This document shows positions 36,392-48,475 of a DNA stretch of 64,000 bases, piece by piece. This stretch comes from Entomortierella parvispora E1425 (Eukaryota > Fungi > Mortierellomycota). How positions within the stretch are numbered: the stretch's first letter is position 1; each line of letters opens with the position of its first letter. The DNA lies in contig BQFW01000003.1 in the NCBI GenBank assembly GCA_020891255.1, forward strand, positions 496,001-560,000. Direction: 5' to 3'. The notes beneath the pieces were generated by a model, which saw nothing but the letters and a program-made list of their open reading frames with translations, did not search any database and was not told where the DNA came from. The position numbers and the translations under genes are program-made.

Positions 36392-39113
36392 ATGTCAGCG
36401 CTCAACACTGCCAGAGTCGAGTCTCTTAGGGACAACATCAACCGCCCTACTCGCAAGATCTCCTACCCCAAGAACGCCGATGGCACCCCCGTCTACACCT
36501 CAGAGTTCTTTGGCGAGAACGTCTTTCACCTTCAGCAGATCGCCAAGGCTCTCCCCAAGCCCGCCTATGCCTCCTTCTTGAAGCAGATGCGTGGTCGTCA
36601 GGCCTTGGACCGTGCCACTGCGGATGCTATTGCTCACGCTGTCAGAATCTGGGCTATGGACCGTGGTGCCACCCATTTCACCCATTGGTTCCAGCCCCAG
36701 ACCGATACCACTGCCGAGAAGCACGATGCTTTCTTGTCCTTGAAGTCGACCTTTACCGCTGCTGGAGAGGAGGTAAATGACTCAAAGCTTGAAAGAAAGC
36801 GGCGTACAAAAAAAGGAAAACATGGAGTCTCCAGAGGAAGGGAATAAGCGAGAAAAAGAACAACAGGAATTAGCAAGCAGTTGGTCGATTGCTGATATGA
36901 ATCCGACAATACCAACTCAGAGCAGCAGTTTGTCATGACAGGAGCAGCACCACGAACCCACTCGAAGGAACCGGACAAAAGGGCAGGTCAAAGGAGCGAA
37001 CCCGATCAAAGGAGCAGCAAAGAGAGAATGAGAGAGTGAGCGACGAGTCTGTAGGACAAACATGTGTTTGCTCCCCCCACCTGCAGAAATAGACTCTCAA
37101 TCACCTCTGAGGATGACGATCAATGACAACAAACAACTACAAAGAGTAGAACAGGTCCTGATCCCCTTTGCCCTTTTGCCCTTTGCCCTTTGCCTTCCTC
37201 TCCCTCCACAGGTCACTGCCATCGACGCCTTCTCTGGCTCGCAGCTTCTCCAGGCCGAGCCTGATGCGTCCTCGTTCCCCTCCGGAGGCATGCGCTCGAC
37301 CTTCGAGGCCCGCGGATACACCGTCTGGGACACCACCTCGCCCATGTTCATCCAGGAGGGTCCCCACGGCACCTCGGTTCTTTATATCCCTTCTGTCTTC
37401 ATCTCCTACAACGGTGATGCTTTGGACGAGAAGACCGTCTTGCTTCGCTCCACCGAGCAGATCTCCAAGGCCTGCTGTGACCTCCTCTCCCTTGTCGAGT
37501 CTGTCCCCGTCGGTGCCCAGCCAAAGACCAACCACGTCTTCACCACCCTCGGAACCGAGCAGGAGTACTTCTTGATTGATCGCTCCCTCTACTCTCTCCG
37601 CCCCGATATCAAGACCACCGGCCGTACCTTGGTCGGTAACTTGCCCCCCAAGCATCAGCAGATGGATGACCATTACTTTGGTCGTATCCCCTCCAAGGTC
37701 ATGGCCACCATGTCCGAGGCCGAGTTGGAGCTCTTCCGTCTCGGAGTCCCCGTCAAGACTCGCCATAACGAGGTCGCTCCCCAGCAGTTCGAGTTGGCCC
37801 CCATCTTCGAGGAGGCTTCCTTGGCTGTTGATCACAACTTGTTGACCATGGATGTCTTGTCCAAGGTCGCCCACAAGAACAAGCTCAAGGTCCTTTACCA
37901 CGAGAAGCCCTTCAAGGGCGTTAACGGTTCTGGCAAGCACTGCAACTGGTCCATGTCGACCGATAGCGGCGAGAACTTGTTGGATCCTACCGTCAAGCCC
38001 GAAACCAACTACCGTTTCTTGTTGATCTTGGTCTCTGTCTTGCACGCTGTCCAGCAGCACGGTGCCCTCTTGAGAACCTCGATTGCCTCCTCCTCCAACG
38101 AGCATCGTCTTGGTGCCTGTGAGGCCCCTCCTTCGATCTTGTCCATCTTCTTGGGTCAGCATTTGACCGAGGTCTTGAACTCCATTGAGGAGTCCCGCCC
38201 TATCAAGAACTTCTCCATGCCCGAGATCCAGACCATCAAGTTGGGTGGTACCGCTTTGGATGTCAAGGTCGCTTCCCTTCCCAGCATTGCCCGTGATTTG
38301 ACCGACCGTAACCGTACCTCTCCTTTTGCCTTCACCGGTAACAAGTTTGAGTTCCGTGCCGTTGGTTCCAAGCAGTCTCCTTCTTTCCCCGTCACCATCT
38401 TGAACGCTGCCGTGGCCTCTGCCTTGCAGGATGTCTCTGCTGCTTTGCGTGAGCAGATGGGATCCAAGCCCTTCCCCTCCGATGCTGACAAGTTGGCTGT
38501 CATCAAGCAGTTCATTGTCAAGACCAAGAACATCCGCTTCGAGGGTGATGGTTACTCTGATGCATGGATCGCCGAGGCTGAGAAGCGTGGATTGCCCAAC
38601 ATCAAGACCTGCCCCGAGGCCTTTGAGCAACTGATTGCCCCCCACCACCTGTCCATGTTGACCAAGCTCGGTATCTTCTCCAACAGCGAGTTGACCTCGA
38701 GATACTTCATCATGAACGAGCGTTACGCCAAGGATCTCTTGGTCGAGGCCAACACCATGCGCACCCTCTTGGCCCAGCAGATCTTGCCCGCTGCCTTTGA
38801 ATACCGTGGCTCCTTGGCCCAGTCCGTTCAGTTGTTGAACGCGATCGAGGGTGAGTCCCAGTCGCCCGAGCTCGAGGCCTTGAAGGCCTTGACGCCCGTG
38901 GTCAAGAAAATGCAGGCTGCCATTGTTGGTTTGGATGAGGCCATTGCCAAGTTGCACACTATCCATGACGATGCCGTCGCTGAGGCCAAGGCTGCCAGCG
39001 ACTTTATTGTCCCTGCTTTGCAGCATGCCCGTATCATTGCTGATCAGCTCGAGGTCTTGACCGCCGACAAGTACTACCCCATCCCTCGTTACAGCGAGCT
39101 CCTTTGGTTCTAA
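36392..39113 (+). CDS. Glutamine synthetase type III (GSIII/GlnN-like)
   Basis: GSIII signatures GATHFTHWFQP..TAEKHDAF, EPDASSFPSGGMRSTFEARGYT, GTEQEYFL, HNEVAPQQFE, EKPFKGVNGSGKHCNWS, RLGACEAPP and DRNRTSPFAFTGNKFEFRAVGS. One intron at 36773-37211. Strong C/T-ending codon bias. Confidence 0.96.
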
Positions 39114-39465: not shown

Positions 39466-42400
39466 TTAGGAGCTAGAAGCTACCTCTTCCATCGCCATCT
39501 CGGGCAATGGGCTGGACGTAGTCATCTCGCCCGCAGTAGAAGTAGGTTCAGACATGGTCTCATCCTTGATCCCAGCCGCCGTGGCAGTCGTGTCCTTTGA
39601 AATCTTGGACTCGCCCGTTTCAGGACGCGACTCGACCAGAGTCATATCTCTGTCAGGTTGCTGCTGCTGTTGATGTTGTTGTTCTCGCTCCTGCTGATGT
39701 TCTGGGCGAACGCGATCCTCATGAGGCTCGTCTTCATCCATTCCAGAAGGAGATTCGAACCGGTTAGCCAGCTCTGTGGCCACAAGAGGTCGGCTCCCTT
39801 CATCCTCCTTGTCTTGCCCTTCACCCACCACCCCTTCCTCGCCCTCCTCCTCTTCCTCAACAGACGCGGGCGTCTTCTTGGGAGGACGCGTCCATTCTCC
39901 AGAGCCAGAGGTCGTCACCGACACCATCGTGGGTGCACTGCTGGCCGCACTGCTCAGACTGGTGGTGCTCATCATACTATTGCCTGTGCTGCTTCGACTG
40001 GAGGCAACCCCGTTGGTCCCAGCAGCAGCTCTAGAGCCCTCCTCTTGGTCCGCTGAGGCTGCCGTTGCTGAAGGTGGCTGCTGCTGTTGGCCATCAAGAG
40101 CCGACATGGACGATGACGCCGAGTTGGAAGACGCTGATCCCTTTTGTCCACATCCAGTGCCGCCGCCCCGCCCCAAATGACGTCTCAGTGCATCCGGTCG
40201 GATGAATTGGTGATGACAGAACGAACACTCGAATGGTTTGATGCCTGTATGCAACTTTGCATGCCGGTTGCGATCATGCAGGCGTGAGAACGCCAGCGCA
40301 CAAGTATCACATTTGTACGGCCGTTCCGCCGTGTGCACCCTCATATGGGCCCTCAAATTGAACGGCCGCGTAAAACTCTTGTGGCAGTTGGGATGAGGGC
40401 AGGTATGGCTGGCCTGACTAGGACGACGGCCTCCTGCGCCAGCACCACTCTTGCCATTCTCATCCATATCCTTGTGCAAAGACTCATCCCCGTCCACTGG
40501 GAACGACTGCGACATATCTCTGTAGTCCATGCGACCCGTAGACGCCTGTCCCGACACAGATCGGTGGCGATCAATGGGAAGCGCAGGTCCTTGCATTTCA
40601 TAGTCCTGTCGTTCGTTCTTGTGCGCCTCAAAAGTCCTGGCCGTCTTGACTGCCGGACCGTCGTGAGACGATCCATGGTAGGAACCCGATCGCTTCTGAC
40701 CTCCAGGGATATGCTTGCTGGGGGCAGTCTGTCGTCCAGATTCGGTGCCGGGGGCCGGTGCCTGAGAGTTGGGACTATGACCCCGTGGCTGAGAACCTCC
40801 CTCTTGGTAAGGGTATGGTACAGGAAGATTCAGGCCAAACGAGGGTAGCATCCGATCGGATCGACGCTCCCCACCTTGTGATCCTTCATAGTGACCATGG
40901 TCATAGGACGACGGTGAAGTGGGATAACGACCATGTGCGGATGAAGATGACTGCTGTCGAAGCATGGGAGAGGTCGGAGAGCCTGCCATAGCGGATCCAG
41001 GCGACGAAGTGGGAGAGTGAGGCGGTGGCGGGTGATGGTACGATCCACTGTGGAAGGTAGGCGAGGGCCCTGGTCGGTGAGCCCCTTGATGACGATGATG
41101 GTCAGGTTCGAGTCGAATGGAAGGAAGGGAGCCAGAGCGCGAAGGAGGAACGTCCACTGGGCGCAGATACCTTCTTGGCCCAGACGACTGCCCTCCGTTC
41201 TCACCATTCCCAGCAGGATAGTGTGTTCCAAACGACTCCCGGAGAGGCGAGGGCGAGCGTGCTGGCGCTCCATGATGCATAGGTGCATGCATGCTCTGTG
41301 ATACTTGACGAGGGCGGGCATGGTGCGGTGAAGACGCCTGCCCATGGTGCTGTTGCTGGTGTTGTTGAGGTGGGGATGAGATCATGGGTCGCGAGTGTTC
41401 GTGTTGTTGAGCTTGAAGAGTCTGAGAAGAATCCCGGTGAAGATCCACTGGCGCCTGCGCCCTGGGAGCACTATTGTCTCCCGACATGGACTTTACATAG
41501 ATATTCCCGCCAGAACCTCTCGCCTTCTTGGCGCGGCTGTATGCCTCGTGAATGTCATCTTTCAGATTGCTCGTGTTGATACTGCCACCGTAGCCCTCGT
41601 GTGTAACCGTTGGTTTGGGTGCAGATCGTAAGGCTTCCAGTGCACGCTCAGAGTTGGGATGGTACATGCATACAAACTCTGTGCTCGCCTCCGGGTTGTC
41701 TTCAAACAAGAGTCGAGGAAGTGCTTGGTGGCAGTTGGGTACTTTGCCCGAAGCACCGTGACTCTCCAAAAGCTCGTAGAGGGTTCGTTGGTTTGTCCAG
41801 GCAGCATAGTGCAATGCTACAAGAATAAATATAAAATAGAATAAATATCGGTTCCACATTCATCTCTACGATTGATGTCTTGTTTTTGATGCAACCCTTA
41901 CCAGTAAACCCGTTCCAGTCAGGCGAGTTGATTTCGATGCGTTCTTGGAGAAGATACTGAACCAACAAGTTCATCTCGAGCATCACCGCCAGATGCAGCA
42001 TTGTATGACGTTGGTCATTTTGCATCGAGATGTGTTGAAGGTCCTCTGCATTCTTGATGGTGCTCAAGATGGCAGATTCAAGCGCCTTGCAGGACTGAGT
42101 GGTCGGCGACACTGACTGAGTTACGCTCAGGGACATCATCTCGGCGACTAGGTGTTCCAACTCTTCATCATCCTCCAGGCTCTGCTCCAATGACAATGGG
42201 CTGTGGCTGGACATGCGCCTGGGGCTGGAACCCATAGGTTTGAGTCGAGGTTGTCCAAGACTTGAACGTTGTGAAGTCGAAATGTCGGAAGAGTCCCTAC
42301 GCATGCTTCCTCTGCGAACTACCCGAGTGGCTCTGGATCGCATGTCACCCAGACCACCAAGCCGTTGCTCCACCTTTTCCGATACATCAGAGGACGTCAG

Positions 42401-45400
42401 CCCGGTTCCTGATCGGTGCGGTCCCTCGTCATAGTCGTCACGCCCCATCACCAGGATTTCTGCGACCAACTCTGCCAGTTGCAGTCCTCGCTTGTCTGCA
42501 TATGAAAACTTTGTATCCGGTGCGGCTCTACCCACCGATGACAATTTCGAGTGAAAGCCCACGGAAACTACAGTAGGCTGAATTCTAGGAGGTGTACGAC
42601 AGATCAGCACATCCGAGTGCAGCACGGTGACATTGGTTGCAGGCACAGAGTCAAAGTAAGGGGTCAATCCGGCTAAACAGCGACAGCAAGCGACAACAAA
42701 GGAAGGTTAAAGACAACATCTAGGGAAAGCAAAATCAAGCTTTCCTCAATGAATGCCACTTACATCTGAATCCAGAGCCAAACACTGTCACTTCAGTGCC
42801 ACCCAGCATGTCACCACTATCAGGGATGATCTTGGAGATTTTGGGAGTCACAATGGTCTCGTTCCAGGACTTTGACTTTACAGGCCCATAACCAGAATGG
42901 CCAGCCAATCTCGAATCAGGCATGGATGAACTATGGGCAGGGCCCGGGAACGATCCCGACCCTTGGAATGATGAGGATCGACCACTGTATGAATCTTTGT
43001 GTTGTTGTCTGGAATCTGCAGAGGCGGCAGGTTCCTGGATCCTTGGAAGGTGGTCAGAAGGGTAGGATCTTGGGCTGTCATACGAGTTGAACGATTGATG
43101 GTGTGGTGTATGTTGGGAGCGAGCTGCAGGCGAAGACTGCGCATGGTCGTGACTGGAGCCATAAGCTCGATCCATGGGCTCGTCGGGTATAGAATCTGGT
43201 TCCTCAGAATAAAAGTTTTGGCCTCCCATCACCATGGATGGACCCGCCGTACCGAGCTCATCCTCTGGACGGGTCACGCGAGGCTTGGCCTCTCCCTTAT
43301 CTTCACTGAATGAAGCCATGCCCTTGTTCTTATGGTTTCCCGTAAAAAGAATGTCCTTTGTCCTGCAAGAGCCCACGCGGATCTTGCTCCCATTAATGTA
43401 TTGCATCAGACTGAACTTGAAGCTGTTAATAGAATAACCAAGGAACATCACGAGGTTAGTGTTTGTCTATCGCCATTTTTCTGCTGCATGTACCATGCGT
43501 CATTTGCAATTTTTGGAACTTACAAATAACGGTCATTGTTGCCGCGTTTGTCGTGGTGTGTGGATGAACAAAGGACCTTGGCCATGACTGTCGATGTACC
43601 ATGAGTAAAATCGACAATGTGGTCCGATACACAAAATTGAAGAATCTGTCCAGGATCGACATTGTCGCCAGCCGTATGAGACTTTGCTGGTGCACCAGGC
43701 CCTGTTGAAGGCTTTCGTACCTTTCCTTCGACCTAAATGGACAGATCCGATGGGTGAAGATGACGTCAGCATCCGAGAGACTGGGGCTCTATTCTCAGCA
43801 ACGAAACATATAGAATCTGCGGGTTACCTTATGACAGCACTCCGGACAGGCTTGGACAATCGCTTCAGAGCTCGCCAAATGAACAGTAACCTCCAGATAA
43901 AAGTGCGTTTCCGGATCGCCAGGAGGAACGGAGGGTGCATCATGTGGCTCTGGTGCTGTGCCCACAGACGCGTCTGTTGCTGCAGCGCCATCTCCTTGCT
44001 TAGACTTCAAGTGGCTCTGTATCATGCGCCTTGGGAGGATGAGTGACATTGGGCTTGAAAATGCATCTGCAGCCGCTGTCCTCAAGTCTAGTTTGATTAG
44101 GAATTGTTGGCCTGTCCTGAACGAATTTGTGTCCTGATTACGCTTGTGGAAGGTGGCGACAGTCAGATGGTATTGTCCCGAGGTGAGCACAGCCGGTGAC
44201 GACAAGGCAGGACCACTAGATGTTTGAATGAATGGAGGGAACGGGGCCACAAGAAGAGAGAAGGGGACACAAAAGGGTTAGTTCATCATGCACCCCGAGC
44301 ATTGTGCCACCATCGATTGAGGGGAAAGGGAAACAAGGGGCAGGTGGCGGGTCTCAATGTAGCTGCCGAAGGGTCTCGCGCTTCTGAATTTGCTCGCTCT
44401 TTGTTGATGGTTTCCTGTTGTTTTCTTTGGAGCACGCCCACATGTGCGCAAGCGAAAGGCAAAGGGAAGGCTGAACAGAAGGAGGAGGGCTCGGGCCTTG
44501 GCACGCACGCTCACACATTCAAACAGACACACGCACACACGTACAAACGCATTGAGGGCTGAAAGCAAACAGAGAGTTTGCACCCGGGCGGGCTGAACTC
44601 AGCGGACCGCCTTTAGTGCAATTTGTCCCCTCCCGTGCTCCTTCTCCAGCGCCTGCACCCCTGGGAAGCCCATGATGAACCTTCTTTTCCTTTTTTTTCT
44701 CTTTCTAGTAAAAGGACACGTACCGGAAGCTGGTGGAGCTGCCGCTGTTTGCTCGACTGACAGGACCGTTGTTGTGGCTGTTGTGATGGGTTGAGGGAGG
44801 GTGATGGTGGCTCGCGGTGCTGCTGCCGCTGTTGCTGCGGTGGCTGTGATGATCCGACAACGTGTCCATTGATCCCGAAGAGCGCGGTCCTAAAACTGAG
44901 GTCACTGGTCCTGATGCTGGCGTGGCTGCCAGTGCCGATGACGACGAGGCATGGTGCTGGGGGTGGTGATCATCTGGCAGTGAAGCTTCGCTCATCAAGG
45001 GGCTATTGACCAGAAAAAGGGCCTCTTCCGGCGGGAGGACAAATGATGACGGTGCGGAAGCCTCCAACTAGACACACCAAAAAAAGAAAATAATCATGCC
45101 AAGGGAGAGAACGGTTAGCGTAGGGCCAATGGTCCACAGGATTCGGGCGACAGAGCGACCCAGGGGGAGCGGGGCGAAGGCGTAAAAAGGAGGCTGAAGG
45201 CAAAGAGGCGGCTCGTTCTTCCTTTTCATATTCCTGTTCGTTTGTTGTTGTTACTATTGTTGGTGTTGTCCAGGACATTGCCCAATGTGTGTTCACTGTG
45301 CTCTCTCGCTTTACATGGCGGATGGTCCATTCACTCCCGAGCAGCATCAAGCTGACGCAAAAACATTCAGTAACATAAATGGGGGGAGGTGGGATCCGTC

Positions 45401-45742
45401 CATAATGGGGACCATGCTCCTGTACATAAGCGAGAATGAGTGCACAGCTAAGGATCGTAGGGGTGTCCACGGTGATGTATCCATGTGCTGAGCTCGGTTG
45501 CCGCTTCTTGAATGCATTCACACAAAACAGGTGTGCTCAGATCGCCATCCACTGGTCCACTGCTGGTCAACATAAGGAGATAGGGCATGAATAGAGAAGA
45601 GTTGGTCACATACGGTCTGGCTTGCCTGCTGGCTGGGGGAGTAAGCATTGGGCGAGTTGGCCTTGTAGGGAGGGGCGGGATTGGACCGCGAGTTGCCTTG
45701 TTGCAGGCGATGTTCACCCGGAGGAGGGTTGTCTGAAGCCAT
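39466..45742 (-). CDS. Spt23/Mga2-like transcription factor (N-terminal DBD-like domain, IPT/TIG, 2 ankyrin repeats) fused to three C2H2 zinc fingers; 5' exon structure uncertain
   Basis: Exons give CPECCHK|VEGK..QILQFCVSDHIVDFTHG..KVLCSSTHH, DILFTGNHK, IPT (TPKISKIIPDSGDMLGGTEVTVFGSGF) and ANK (HTMLHLAV; GFT|ALHYAAW), then fingers FTRPFNLRAH, FSRLHDRNRH and FIRPDALRRH. Introns identified: 44723-44216, 43827-43733 and 41901-41817. First exon (45742-45614) is inferred. Confidence 0.82.
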
Positions 45743-46069
45743 TTTGAATATATCGTTCAATCAGTTTGAGGCAGTCAATCAGTCTAGAAAAGATCAATCG
45801 CCCAAAAATGAAGAGATGAGGCAGGTGACAGGGGAAGAGGAGACTCGAGGAAGATGGCAAGGTGAGATGAGAGGGAAAGAAGAAAGTGAACGAGCAAAGA
45901 GGGGGCAAAGAGGGGTGGAGAAATAATGAAGAGAAGTGGAAGAGGGGTGCAGGGAAAAGAGGGCGAGAGCAAAGAGAGAAGGTGGGAAACAAACGAGAAC
46001 GGACGATCGGCTAGAGTCAAAGAAGGCCCATGGAGAAAAAGAGATGAATGAAATGGATTGCAGATGAAG

Positions 46070-46150
46070 AAAAGAGAGAGAGAGAGAGAGAGAAAGAGAA
46101 GAGGGGGGATAAGAAGAAGAAGAAGAGGAAGAAGAAGCAAGCAAGCAAGC
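46070..46150. repeat. Compound microsatellite (GA)n/(AAG)n/(AAGC)n
   Basis: Visible simple repeats in the divergent intergenic region. Confidence 0.85.
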
Positions 46151-46383
46151 AAGAAGCAAGACGAGGACATCCCATCCATCCCATCGGTGCCTTGTCCGTC
46201 GTGGCGGGTGTGTCTCTGCGGCAGAGTGTGGCGGTGTTTCTCCGCCCTCGACTCTTTTTTTTTTCGTCTTACTTTCCCTCACTCGCTTGAATCCCCCCTC
46301 TCCTCTGCCAGAGTGCCCATATCCTCATAACAGACAACAACCCCGGGGAACAGGTTCGATTGCCCCACCCTCACTCTCTCTCT

Positions 46384-46548: not shown

Positions 46549-46584
46549 GTCTCTCTGTCCGTCTCTCTGTCCGTCTCTCTGTCC
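46549..46584. repeat. 12-bp tandem repeat (GTCTCTCTGTCC)x3
   Basis: Read directly from the sequence. Confidence 0.8.
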
Positions 46585-47680
46585 GTCTGTCTGGTCTGTC
46601 TTGTCTGTCTTCACACTGCGCTGCACTTTACCCAACCCGACAAACGGCGCCATTTTAGACCCGTTCCTGATCCAGTCTCTCCACTCCATCTCCCTCGACC
46701 TCTCTCACCTCAGTCATCTTCGTCTTGGCAAGACCTGGCTTTCTCCCTCAGCCGTCGCAGCTCATCAGAGCAAACACGACAGCCTTCCACAAGGGTCTCG
46801 CCTTGTCCCACCCTGCCCTTCCTCGCCCGTCATTCGAGAACAAAAGAGAATCAAACGCGCGCACTTTGACTCTCTGGGGGGATCGACCTCTTCTCCTATT
46901 GTTGCTTCGCCAAAACAAAACCCTCTTTTCCCTCCATCCAATCGATTTTATCGGCGTGTTTTGTTGGTCCGGTTCCCTTGTCGATCCATGACGCGGCTCT
47001 CTACCTCGTTCAGGAACAACTTTGGCTATGGTGGTCTGTCACCGAAACATAGAGAAAATAGCCTGCAGGCCAATTTCGCCCTTCTGTCGGGAGAAGCGGC
47101 CAGCCCATTCTCCCAGCAGGATGAAAGATTAATAAATAAATTGCTACCGTGCCAGCCGGTTGGCTTGGCTAAAAGATGGGTCGATCCCATTCCTTAAGAT
47201 TGTATGAGGACTTGACCGGGCTCTCAACAAACCGACCATGGTTGCTGTCTGTTGTCCTGGCACAAAAGGCAAGCCAGACCACAACAGTTACAAAAATAAA
47301 TCGAGAGCCACGCCTCTTCTGTGCGGGTCCAAGAGAACAGAAAGAATTTGAAAGATACGATCGCGTTTTTTTGTTCCTTCTGTGCTGTCACACCAAGGGA
47401 GGGTCGCAAGACTCGGCGCGTCGCTTTCTTGCGTTGTTTCCCCCCCCCCCCCCCTTTTTTTTTTATCGCAGGTTGGGCTGGTTGGAGTACAACCTGTGGT
47501 TGCAGCCTCTGTCTAGCCTGGCCTGGCCTACATTGCCTTTGCACAGCACGCGCGAAAGAGGGAAGACAACCCTGGGCAGTCATGAGTCCTGCAACACAAG
47601 ACAAGACACCAGAAGCGTGTCTCTGGGTCATGCCGACTTTCACGAAGAACAGTGACAAAGAGGGTCGCGGTGACGATGAC

Positions 47681-47734
47681 AATGATAATGATAATGATAA
47701 TGATAATGATAATGATAATGATAATGATAATGAT
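47681..47734. repeat. Hexamer microsatellite (AATGAT)x9
   Basis: Nine perfect copies read directly. A 72-nt homopurine tract follows at 47750-47821. Confidence 0.92.
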
Positions 47735-48475
47735 GACCATCCATCCATCAAAGAAGAGAGAAAGAGGGAGAAGAGGGAGAAGAAGAAGAAGAAGAAGAAA
47801 AAAAAAAAGAAAAAAAAGAGGCGCGTCCAGGAGAGACATTGAAATCAATCATTTCCCCCTTCTCCGTTCATCCAACACACACAACACATATAACACACAA
47901 CACATATAACACAACACACATATAACACACACACAACAGAAACAGACACACAGTCCAGCCACCGCCCACGGCCGATTCGGGGCACATGCGTCCCTGTTTG
48001 CATCGCTTCATTTGCATCCTTCCTTTCTTTCTTCCTCTGTCCCGCCCTTGACCTACCCTTGACCCTTGCTCTTCCTCCGGAAGACTGATACCACTCCGTC
48101 CACATCTATCCTCTCCAGAACTCAACTGCCAACGGAAACTACTGCTTTCTTTTCTTCTTTCTTTCTGCTACTACTCGTTATTTTATAGTTTTGGCGACCT
48201 ACTGCTCATCACACACATCCTTCCTTCCTTCCTCAAATCAATCTTGAAATCTCTTTGTTCCCTCCCTCTTCCGCAACCCATCCCTCTCTGAGCGATGAAC
48301 TAATGAGGATCTCGTCACTCTTGCCACCCCTCCATCCATCAGTCAACATTACTCTAGGTAACTGCCCCCTTGCATGGCCACGTTTCGATCAGCCTTTGCC
48401 TGTCCTCTCTGCCTTGCTTGCTCACGCACTCTCTGTTCTTATTTTGAAAAATAGTGACACACTGCACCCCACAAT

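Follow-up and report, generated by a model that had tools for sequence, protein, structure and literature searches.

Mga2 and Spt23 of Saccharomyces cerevisiae, and Mga2 of Schizosaccharomyces pombe, are regulators of OLE1 and lipid genes that are anchored in the endoplasmic reticulum (ER) and processed by the proteasome. The hallmarks of Spt23 and Mga2 are an Rsp5-binding PY-type motif (LPKY), a C-terminal transmembrane (TM) helix that serves as the sensor of lipid saturation, and control of the delta-9 desaturase gene. NFAT, NF-kB p105, CAMTA and EBF are soluble factors in which an Ig-like or p53-like DNA-binding domain is followed by an IPT domain; p105 and CAMTA also have ankyrin repeats, and NFAT adds a calcineurin-docking, SP-rich regulatory region. 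Crz1, Prz1 and CrzA are calcineurin-responsive C2H2 factors, and we know of no p53-like, IPT or ankyrin module in proteins of this type. Here we describe a gene of Entomortierella parvispora E1425 whose product joins an Spt23/Mga2-type module to three C2H2 zinc fingers, and which we refer to as the fusion. The gene lies in a stretch of 64,000 nucleotides (contig BQFW01000003.1, positions 496,001 to 560,000), hereafter the window, and coordinates are those of the window.

The fusion protein has its p53-like DNA-binding domain, IPT/TIG domain and ankyrin repeats in the same order as yeast Mga2 and Spt23. It differs from them in lacking both the C-terminal TM helix and any [LP]PxY motif, in the replacement of an R-E-R-K-R helix, in a sub-gathering score for PF25603 (SPT23_MGA2_DBD, the Pfam model for the Spt23/Mga2 DNA-binding domain, with a cut-off of 27 bits), and in an additional linker of 450 amino acids (aa), a set of three C2H2 fingers, and a tail that is acidic. 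The [LP]PxY motif is absent from all eight fusion proteins searched; in canonical proteins from outside the yeasts it could not be placed with confidence either. The resemblance to NFAT, NF-kB p105, CAMTA and EBF is an analogy of layout only, with no specific sequence relation beyond the shared fold class. With Crz1, Prz1 and CrzA the fusion shares three consecutive fingers toward the C-terminus (followed in the fusion by an acidic tail of ~225 aa), helices of the FTRP.NL..H,.R.HD..RH and.R.DAL.RH types, a third finger ending in Cys, and an upstream S/P-rich region with a PxIxIT-like motif. However, the similarity is limited to ~90 residues and is not exclusive to these proteins.

Remote homology, by profile alignment and fold model, together with shared introns identifies the window protein as a genuine member of the Spt23/Mga2 family. 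We hold its architecture (p53-like domain, IPT/TIG, ankyrin repeats, disordered linker, three fingers and no TM helix) to be very nearly certain. We also consider it probable, if far from assured, that one seven-exon gene encodes a soluble, Mortierellaceae-specific paralogue of Spt23/Mga2, a nuclear factor that would dimerize through its IPT domain, read DNA with its fingers and be regulated through its linker. The main features are as follows.

39466..45742, minus strand: whole coding sequence, ATG at 45742, stop codon ending at 39466; 1616 aa
45043-44969, minus strand: hydrophobic-acidic motif, aa 52-76, in exon 2; conserved in P0058, P0059 and P0061
43317..44196, minus strand: diverged Spt23/Mga2 p53-like DNA-binding domain, aa 165-392, exons 3-5; interrupted by introns 43827-43733 and 43523-43423
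43828..43848, minus strand: CPECCHK, the CxxC and start of the remodelled recognition helix; continues into exon 4 as VEGKVRKPSTGPG
42503..42845, minus strand: IPT/TIG domain, aa 550-633; Pfam 33.5 bits, cut-off 20.9; split by the phase-1 intron 42763-42673
41749..42031, minus strand: ankyrin repeats, aa 791-856; Ank_2 35.4 bits, cut-off 27.3; split by intron 41901-41817
40408..41748, minus strand: S/P/G/H-rich linker, aa 857-1303, presumably disordered; short conserved motifs
40147..40407, minus strand: three zinc fingers, aa 1304-1390; C2H2, C2H2 and a third ending H...C; Pfam zf-C2H2 three times
39466..40146, minus strand: Ser/Ala/Glu-rich acidic tail, then stop; conserved motifs RFESPSGMDEDE and SPLPEM..EE

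The original prediction had expected an Spt23/Mga2 DNA-binding domain, IPT, ankyrin and zinc-finger domains, and no TM helix. Pfam returned TIG, Ank_2 and three zf-C2H2 domains, and hydropathy gave no TM helix; only PF25603 fell short, remaining below its gathering score. Pfam searches with single exons missed the N-terminal domain. The claim that no hydrophobic helix occurs up to the stop was borne out: with a mean Kyte-Doolittle score of 1.6 over 19 residues as the threshold for a TM helix, the maximum in the whole protein is 1.41, within an ankyrin helix, and none of eight orthologues reaches 1.6. In canonical relatives (those with PF25603, TIG, ankyrin repeats and a TM helix) the C-terminal score is 1.8-2.8. 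S, P, G, H and E are abundant in regions 400-545, 860-1300 and 1390-1616 of the protein. The motif at aa 52-76 is a possible activation segment.

Membership of the Spt23/Mga2 family and the remodelled helix

The claim of an Spt23/Mga2-type N-terminal domain is supported by profile alignment, fold search and shared introns, and the four motifs quoted for it (CPEC, IVDF, LCSSTHH and ILFTGNHK) are all found in the spliced protein. An hhalign comparison of six fusion-clade rows (five of them distinct) with 53 canonical domains gave a probability of 96.2% and an E-value of 2.1e-9 over 177 columns; against only four canonical sequences the match was weak (probability 67%). In a Foldseek search of the Protein Data Bank (PDB) with an AlphaFold2 (AF2) model of the domain (pLDDT 75), the top 50 matches were all cores of the p53/p63/p73 family, with E-values from 3.6e-4, TM-scores of 0.35-0.50 and probabilities of 1.00 at best and at least 0.98 throughout. 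The first three matches in a Swiss-Prot fold search were S. pombe Mga2 (3.8e-9), S. cerevisiae MGA2 (7.3e-9) and SPT23 (3.8e-7). CAMTA-like (CG-1) and EBF-like readings of the domain were considered and dropped; COE2 ranked only 19th in the fold search. The p53-like fold of the model agrees with the published result for Mga2 (bioRxiv 10.64898/2026.08.31.748402).

Intron positions provide evidence of descent. We mapped the exons of Rhizophagus irregularis Mga2 (P0132 on L002), the fusion orthologue of Gryganskiella (P0001 on L003) and the canonical gene of Gryganskiella (P0302 on L001). In a protein alignment, three introns of the window gene share column and phase with introns of R. irregularis Mga2: one in the DNA-binding domain (codon 357, phase 2), one in the TIG domain (codon 577, phase 1) and one in the ankyrin repeats (codon 834, phase 1). 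A fourth intron within the domains (phase 0, following K287) and a phase-0 intron of Rhizophagus differ in position by a single codon. The shared positions and phases indicate that the part of the gene encoding the DNA-binding domain, TIG and ankyrin repeats descends from an intron-rich Mucoromycota Mga2 gene. The ankyrin intron highlighted in the original prediction (41901-41817) is identical in position and phase to the intron after aa 836 of R. irregularis Mga2 and is, on this comparison, an old, conserved intron.

The helix that is invariant in canonical proteins has been rewritten in the fusion. C117, C120, C178, H182 and H183 (domain numbering) are invariant in all 58 sequences, including the fusion clade. 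The canonical helix, C-x-x-C-x-x-R-E-[R/A]-K-R-x-x-[RK][KR][KR], is present in 53 of 53 canonical domains, among them those of the anchored Mortierellaceae proteins and the anchor-less Mucorales proteins, and its R, E, K and R are invariant. The counterpart in the five fusion-clade rows is C-P-E-C-C-H-K-V-E-G-K-V-R-K-P-S-T-G-P-G, which contains helix breakers and is invariant within the clade except for one V-to-S change (P0061). The AF2 model has only a short helix at this site, followed by a stretch of low confidence. According to a 2026 preprint, the DNA-binding domain of Mga2 is p53-like and binds the O2R element of OLE1 through a helix with R252, R253 and K254 (bioRxiv 10.64898/2026.08.31.748402). 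These residues lie ~95 residues into the domain, a position that fits the canonical helix, although they were not mapped residue by residue. Thus, the canonical R-E-R-K-R helix is probably the site of the basic residues used for O2R binding, and its loss from the fusion suggests that DNA reading has moved to the fingers.

Canonical Mga2 genes, descent and distribution

When the DNA-binding domain of Rhizophagus Mga2 was used as the query, canonical proteins of ~1280-1430 aa were recovered from Mortierella alpina, M. polycephala, Linnemannia, Podila, Haplosporangium, Actinomortierella and Gryganskiella, and the cluster also includes M. antarctica and Podila verticillata NRRL 6337. Examples are KAG0047287.1 (Gryganskiella), KFH72905.1 (P. 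verticillata) and OAQ25724.1 (Linnemannia elongata). Fifteen of the 16 Mortierellaceae proteins examined have the TM helix KMLFLFWVPVLLVMLALTIIRI at the C-terminus (Kyte-Doolittle score 2.74-2.76); the match is exact in 14 of the 16, and P0281 differs by one conservative I/V change. In Gryganskiella the fusion and canonical genes are present in one assembly, on different contigs, and P. verticillata likewise has both. The presence of a canonical Mga2 beside the fusion in related genomes indicates that the window gene is a diverged paralogue, and not the Mga2 of the lineage with a swapped tail. The original proposal that the membrane anchor had been replaced was therefore wrong for the lineage: Mortierellaceae keep a canonical, anchored Mga2, also in genomes that carry the fusion.

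The two Mortierellaceae proteins belong to the same family, occur in the same genomes and share the TIG and ankyrin modules. The canonical protein, of ~1300 aa, has a strong PF25603 match and a conserved TM anchor, and its gene is intron-poor, whereas the fusion gene retains ancestral introns. In the canonical gene of Gryganskiella (L001:1501-5995) we mapped one intron, after aa 67, and one exon of 3.7 kb. An intron-poor canonical copy beside an intron-keeping fusion paralogue could reflect cDNA-mediated intron loss, or an origin of the canonical copy by retrocopying.

In a maximum likelihood (ML) tree of 47 sequences and 712 columns, the fusion clade has support of 100/100 and a stem of ~5 substitutions per column, and it emerges from an unresolved polytomy. 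The canonical Mortierellaceae proteins also have a long stem (1.16). Constraining the two Mortierellaceae groups to be sisters lowers the log-likelihood by 1.18 units (p-AU, from the approximately unbiased (AU) test, 0.345). The AU test does not reject a sister relation of the two, nor does it establish one; duplication within Mortierellomycotina is thus allowed but not demonstrated, and the tree leaves the placement of the fusion clade undecided.

Anchor-less Mga2 paralogues exist independently in Mucorales. The proteins P0126 (Lichtheimia), P0136 and P0149 (Mucor), P0135, P0146 and P0161 have PF25603, TIG and ankyrin repeats, no C-terminal hydrophobic helix, and the tail ...LPTR..N.LS..YTFS....C......GQVYNFMLDPF, and they coexist with TM-anchored copies (P0242, P0248, P0252). 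They resemble the fusion in being soluble family members that coexist with an anchored copy. Unlike the fusion, they retain the canonical DNA-binding helix and lack zinc fingers, and their C-terminus is a conserved GQVYNFMLDPF tail. The ML tree groups them as a clade of their own among the Mucorales/Umbelopsis sequences.

The architecture of TIG, ankyrin repeats and zf-C2H2 was found only in Mortierellaceae, both by a word-indexed search with the last exon and by an exhaustive phmmer search with the IPT-ankyrin exon; below the fusion set, the phmmer E-values fall to generic ankyrin or IPT matches. Named carriers are Gryganskiella cystojenkinii, Dissophora ornata, Podila verticillata, Gamsiella multidivaricata and Lunasporangiospora selenospora, and further sequences come from four Mortierellaceae NCBI records (P0058-P0061) and some Logan fragments. 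At least six named genera carry the fusion. The frame is intact in all fusion species, and nine orthologues (45-65% identity) continue without a break from ankyrin repeats to fingers. Identity within the clade is 68-78% in the p53-like domain, with long invariant runs, and 79-91% in the fingers. Most orthologues were deposited as 'SPT3 Dosage dependent suppressor of Ty-induced promoter mutations-like protein', a name generated automatically from SPT23. In the full-text literature searched, we found no paper describing the fusion or the Mucorales anchor-less paralogues. The architecture, which the original prediction had not recognized, is thus new to the literature searched, but other Mortierellaceae have it too: it is conserved across the family and is already in public databases under automatic names.

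Two other groups of sequences came to our attention. P0076, P0082 and P0083, from Logan or a JGI metagenome, are IPT-ankyrin proteins that group with Basidiomycota Mga2; the C-terminus of P0076 is weakly hydrophobic (Kyte-Doolittle score 1.57) and PF25603 is not recognizable in its first 300 residues, and P0083 matches just the last 30 positions of the PF25603 profile. P0226, P0227, P0233, P0241, P0247 and P0315 are models that join PF25603 to STEEP1, TatD, SelO, eIF3G/RRM and others, and these look like merged neighboring genes, not real fusions.

Gene model and neighborhood

Three-frame translation and inspection of splice sites gave a single minus-strand gene, 45742-39466, with seven exons and six GT-AG introns of 546, 508, 95, 101, 91 and 85 nucleotides (nt) from 5' to 3'.

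45742-45614, minus strand: exon 1, aa 1-43; followed by the 546-nt GT-AG intron
45067-44724, minus strand: exon 2, aa 44-157 plus 2 nt
44215-43828, minus strand: exon 3
43732-43524, minus strand: exon 4
43422-42764, minus strand: exon 5
42672-41902, minus strand: exon 6
41817..41901, minus strand: intron of 85 nt, GT-AG, phase 1; joins ...SPDWNGFT to ALHYAAW
41816-39466, minus strand: exon 7, 2351 nt; uninterrupted frame from ankyrin repeat 2 to the three C2H2 fingers

The spliced translation of 1616 aa is identical at every residue to P0102, which is GJJ69905.1 (EMPS_02254, hypothetical protein, Entomortierella parvispora), labeled 'C2H2-type domain-containing protein' in UniRef. All exons were recovered by tblastn of four orthologues against the window, with an alignment gap precisely at the ankyrin intron. 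Two structural claims of the original prediction, the 85-nt GT-AG intron inside ankyrin repeat 2 (GFT|ALHYAAW) and the 2.3-kb exon that carries the fingers in frame with the ankyrin part, were both confirmed; splicing out the intron, which is in phase 1, restores a standard ankyrin repeat. Consensus splice sites, the restored domain consensus, agreeing gene models from several species and conserved intron positions all point to this splicing pattern. The E. parvispora genome was annotated by AUGUSTUS with cDNA hints from RNA-seq (PMC8759367).

Introns 1 (45613-45068) and 2 (44723-44216), of 546 and 508 nt, are five times as long as the remaining four (85-101 nt), and intron 2 contains GT-rich low-complexity runs. 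The only support for exon 1 is a weak N-terminal resemblance (MASD..P.G...L) to the orthologue P0059.

A convergent neighbor, at 37062-39113 on the plus strand, is an open reading frame (ORF) of 683 aa with GSIII_N, Gln-synt_C and Gln-synt_C-ter domains (a type III glutamine synthetase). Only ~350 nt separate its end from the stop codon of the fusion, and thus there is no room for a further downstream exon. Upstream of the gene is a block of microsatellites (46111-46161, 46549-46610, 47676-47734, 47751-47819 and 47873-47952) with (AAG)n, GTCT-based 12/24-mer, (ATGATA)n and CA-rich units, and the ORFs called there are low-complexity artefacts.

Fingers, linker and proposed role

The fingers carry R/F/N/A, R/H/D/R and R/D/A/R at helix positions -1, 2, 3 and 6. 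In the Swiss-Prot fold search Prz1 of S. pombe, which is the orthologue of Crz1, is their best match (46% identity, E 4.1e-7); Cryptococcus CRZ1 ranks 22nd and S. cerevisiae CRZ1 lies outside the top 30. Matches among PDB sequences and in the protein atlas were to generic C2H2 proteins only. The same helix pattern occurs in a Coemansia protein (P0008, C-terminal fingers), a lichen-fungus protein and Gryganskiella P0009 (N-terminal fingers), and S. cerevisiae Crz1 presumably has the same contact residues. P0009 and P0008 resemble the fusion only within the fingers, so no donor of the finger module can be named. The description of the fingers as Crz1-like holds in that Prz1 is the best reviewed match, but not as an exclusive assignment. 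'Crz1/Prz1-like' is the best available label and does not imply orthology.

The linker of ~450 aa is poorly conserved overall, and an alignment of nine orthologues shows several blocks that are kept. They are NLKDDI.EAYSRAKKAR, which resembles a nuclear localization signal (YSRAKKAR, 41541-41518); RSPSPLRES; RRYL.PVD...GSLPSIR[LFY][ED]; SDRMLPSFGLNLPVPY (LNLPVPY, 40833-40813; alignment consensus SDRMLPSFG.NLP.PY); KRSGSY; and DY[DE].QGPALP (DYEMQGPALP in the window). In the tail, RFESPSGMDEDE and SPLPEM are conserved across orthologues. The PSIRLE stretch that had been noted before the fingers is present at aa 1065-1070 (41124-41107), as located by translation and pattern search. PSIR[LF]E, a loose fit to PxIxIT, is found in six of eight orthologues, and LPVP, which fits LxVP, in five of eight. 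The conserved blocks are probably functional short motifs, and a role in calcineurin docking is one possibility only.

We propose that a new branch was added beside the membrane sensor and did not replace it. Where anchored Mga2 has its juxtamembrane region and TM helix, the fusion has a presumably disordered region of ~450 aa, three nearly invariant fingers and an acidic tail. The protein would act in the nucleus as a transcription factor, with no need to be released from the ER by the proteasome. It would dimerize through the IPT domain, as in Mga2, and read DNA mainly through fingers with helix residues of the fungal Crz1/Prz1-like class, and its control would lie in the disordered region, through phosphorylation or through docking motifs. 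A link to lipid or calcineurin signaling is speculative. One such idea, which we think rather unlikely, is that the fusion is an output tethered in trans: it could form an IPT heterodimer with the ER-anchored Mga2 precursor, be held at the ER and be freed when its partner is processed. Lipid saturation, possibly together with calcineurin acting at the linker, would then turn on a second regulon, one defined by the fingers. The protein would also represent an ongoing hand-over between DNA-binding domains, in which the p53-like helix has been disabled and a C2H2 array gained.

Several observations weigh against the proposal of a soluble paralogue that reads DNA through its fingers. PF25603 does not match the window protein even at an E-value of 10, and in three orthologues it aligns end-to-end along the profile but at a sub-threshold 15-20 bits. 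The input alignment of the AF2 model consisted mostly of canonical domains; the resemblance to Mga2 is thus not fully independent and is supportive only. The remodelled helix still has K and R residues and does not vary among the fusion proteins, so DNA binding by the p53-like domain may persist. In the finger search Sp2, ZIC, KLF and EGR have E-values of 6e-7 to 3e-6, within tenfold of Prz1. The contigs of four sequencing runs of unknown kind gave only chance matches of 20-36 nt to 39800-45750, and no exon joints. Finally, a canonical Mga2 is shown in relatives and not in E. parvispora itself.

This last point, with the family membership and the missing TM helix, would fit a different reading, in which the fusion is the only Mga2/Spt23 of its lineage, its anchor swapped for fingers so that control by lipid saturation became independent of the membrane. 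We find this very unlikely, given the TM-anchored Mga2 of M. alpina, Linnemannia, Podila, Haplosporangium, Actinomortierella and Gryganskiella and the two genomes (the single Gryganskiella assembly, on two contigs, and P. verticillata) that carry both types. The gene model could also be an artefact, in which an Mga2-like gene and a C2H2 gene lying head-to-tail were merged through a chance open frame. The linker is of low complexity, and a search for RNA sequencing runs listed none. However, the 2351-nt frame has no stop from ankyrin repeat 2 to the fingers, and ankyrin repeat 2 is itself in the finger exon; the same continuity is found in nine orthologues, with conserved blocks all along the linker. 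The AUGUSTUS annotation with cDNA hints (PMC8759367) also agrees with models from separately deposited genomes, and a merged model is in our estimation scarcely credible. Still harder to accept is a decaying duplicate, that is, a redundant copy without specific function whose long branch reflects relaxed constraint. The stem of ~5 substitutions per column and the loss of canonical invariant residues would be expected of such a copy, but the frames are intact, the domain and the fingers are conserved within the clade, and the new helix is invariant. Conservation within the clade after a long stem is what rapid change with subsequent purifying selection would produce.

An alternative that we regard as possible, although on balance unlikely, is that the fusion functions as a Crz1. 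Calcineurin would dock at PSIRLE (PxIxIT-like) and LPVP (LxVP-like) and dephosphorylate the SP-rich region, leading to nuclear entry, and the Mga2-like module would be accessory. The ranks of Prz1 and Cryptococcus CRZ1 among the finger matches, and the occurrence of both motifs within conserved blocks of an otherwise poorly conserved linker, are consistent with this. However, the finger matches are not exclusive and the recognition pattern also occurs in unrelated fungal finger proteins such as P0009; long disordered regions acquire such short motifs by chance, and some orthologues lack one or the other.

Mga2 and Spt23 are the model for how eukaryotes sense the saturation of membrane lipids, and Mortierellaceae, the main industrial producers of arachidonic acid, are a group in which the regulation of desaturases is poorly known. 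The fusion is a family-level domain rearrangement known from sequence, and not a new class of system. As a natural experiment, it could help to show which parts of Mga2 serve what, how transcription factors swap DNA-binding modules, and whether oleaginous fungi have a second branch in their lipid-saturation circuit.

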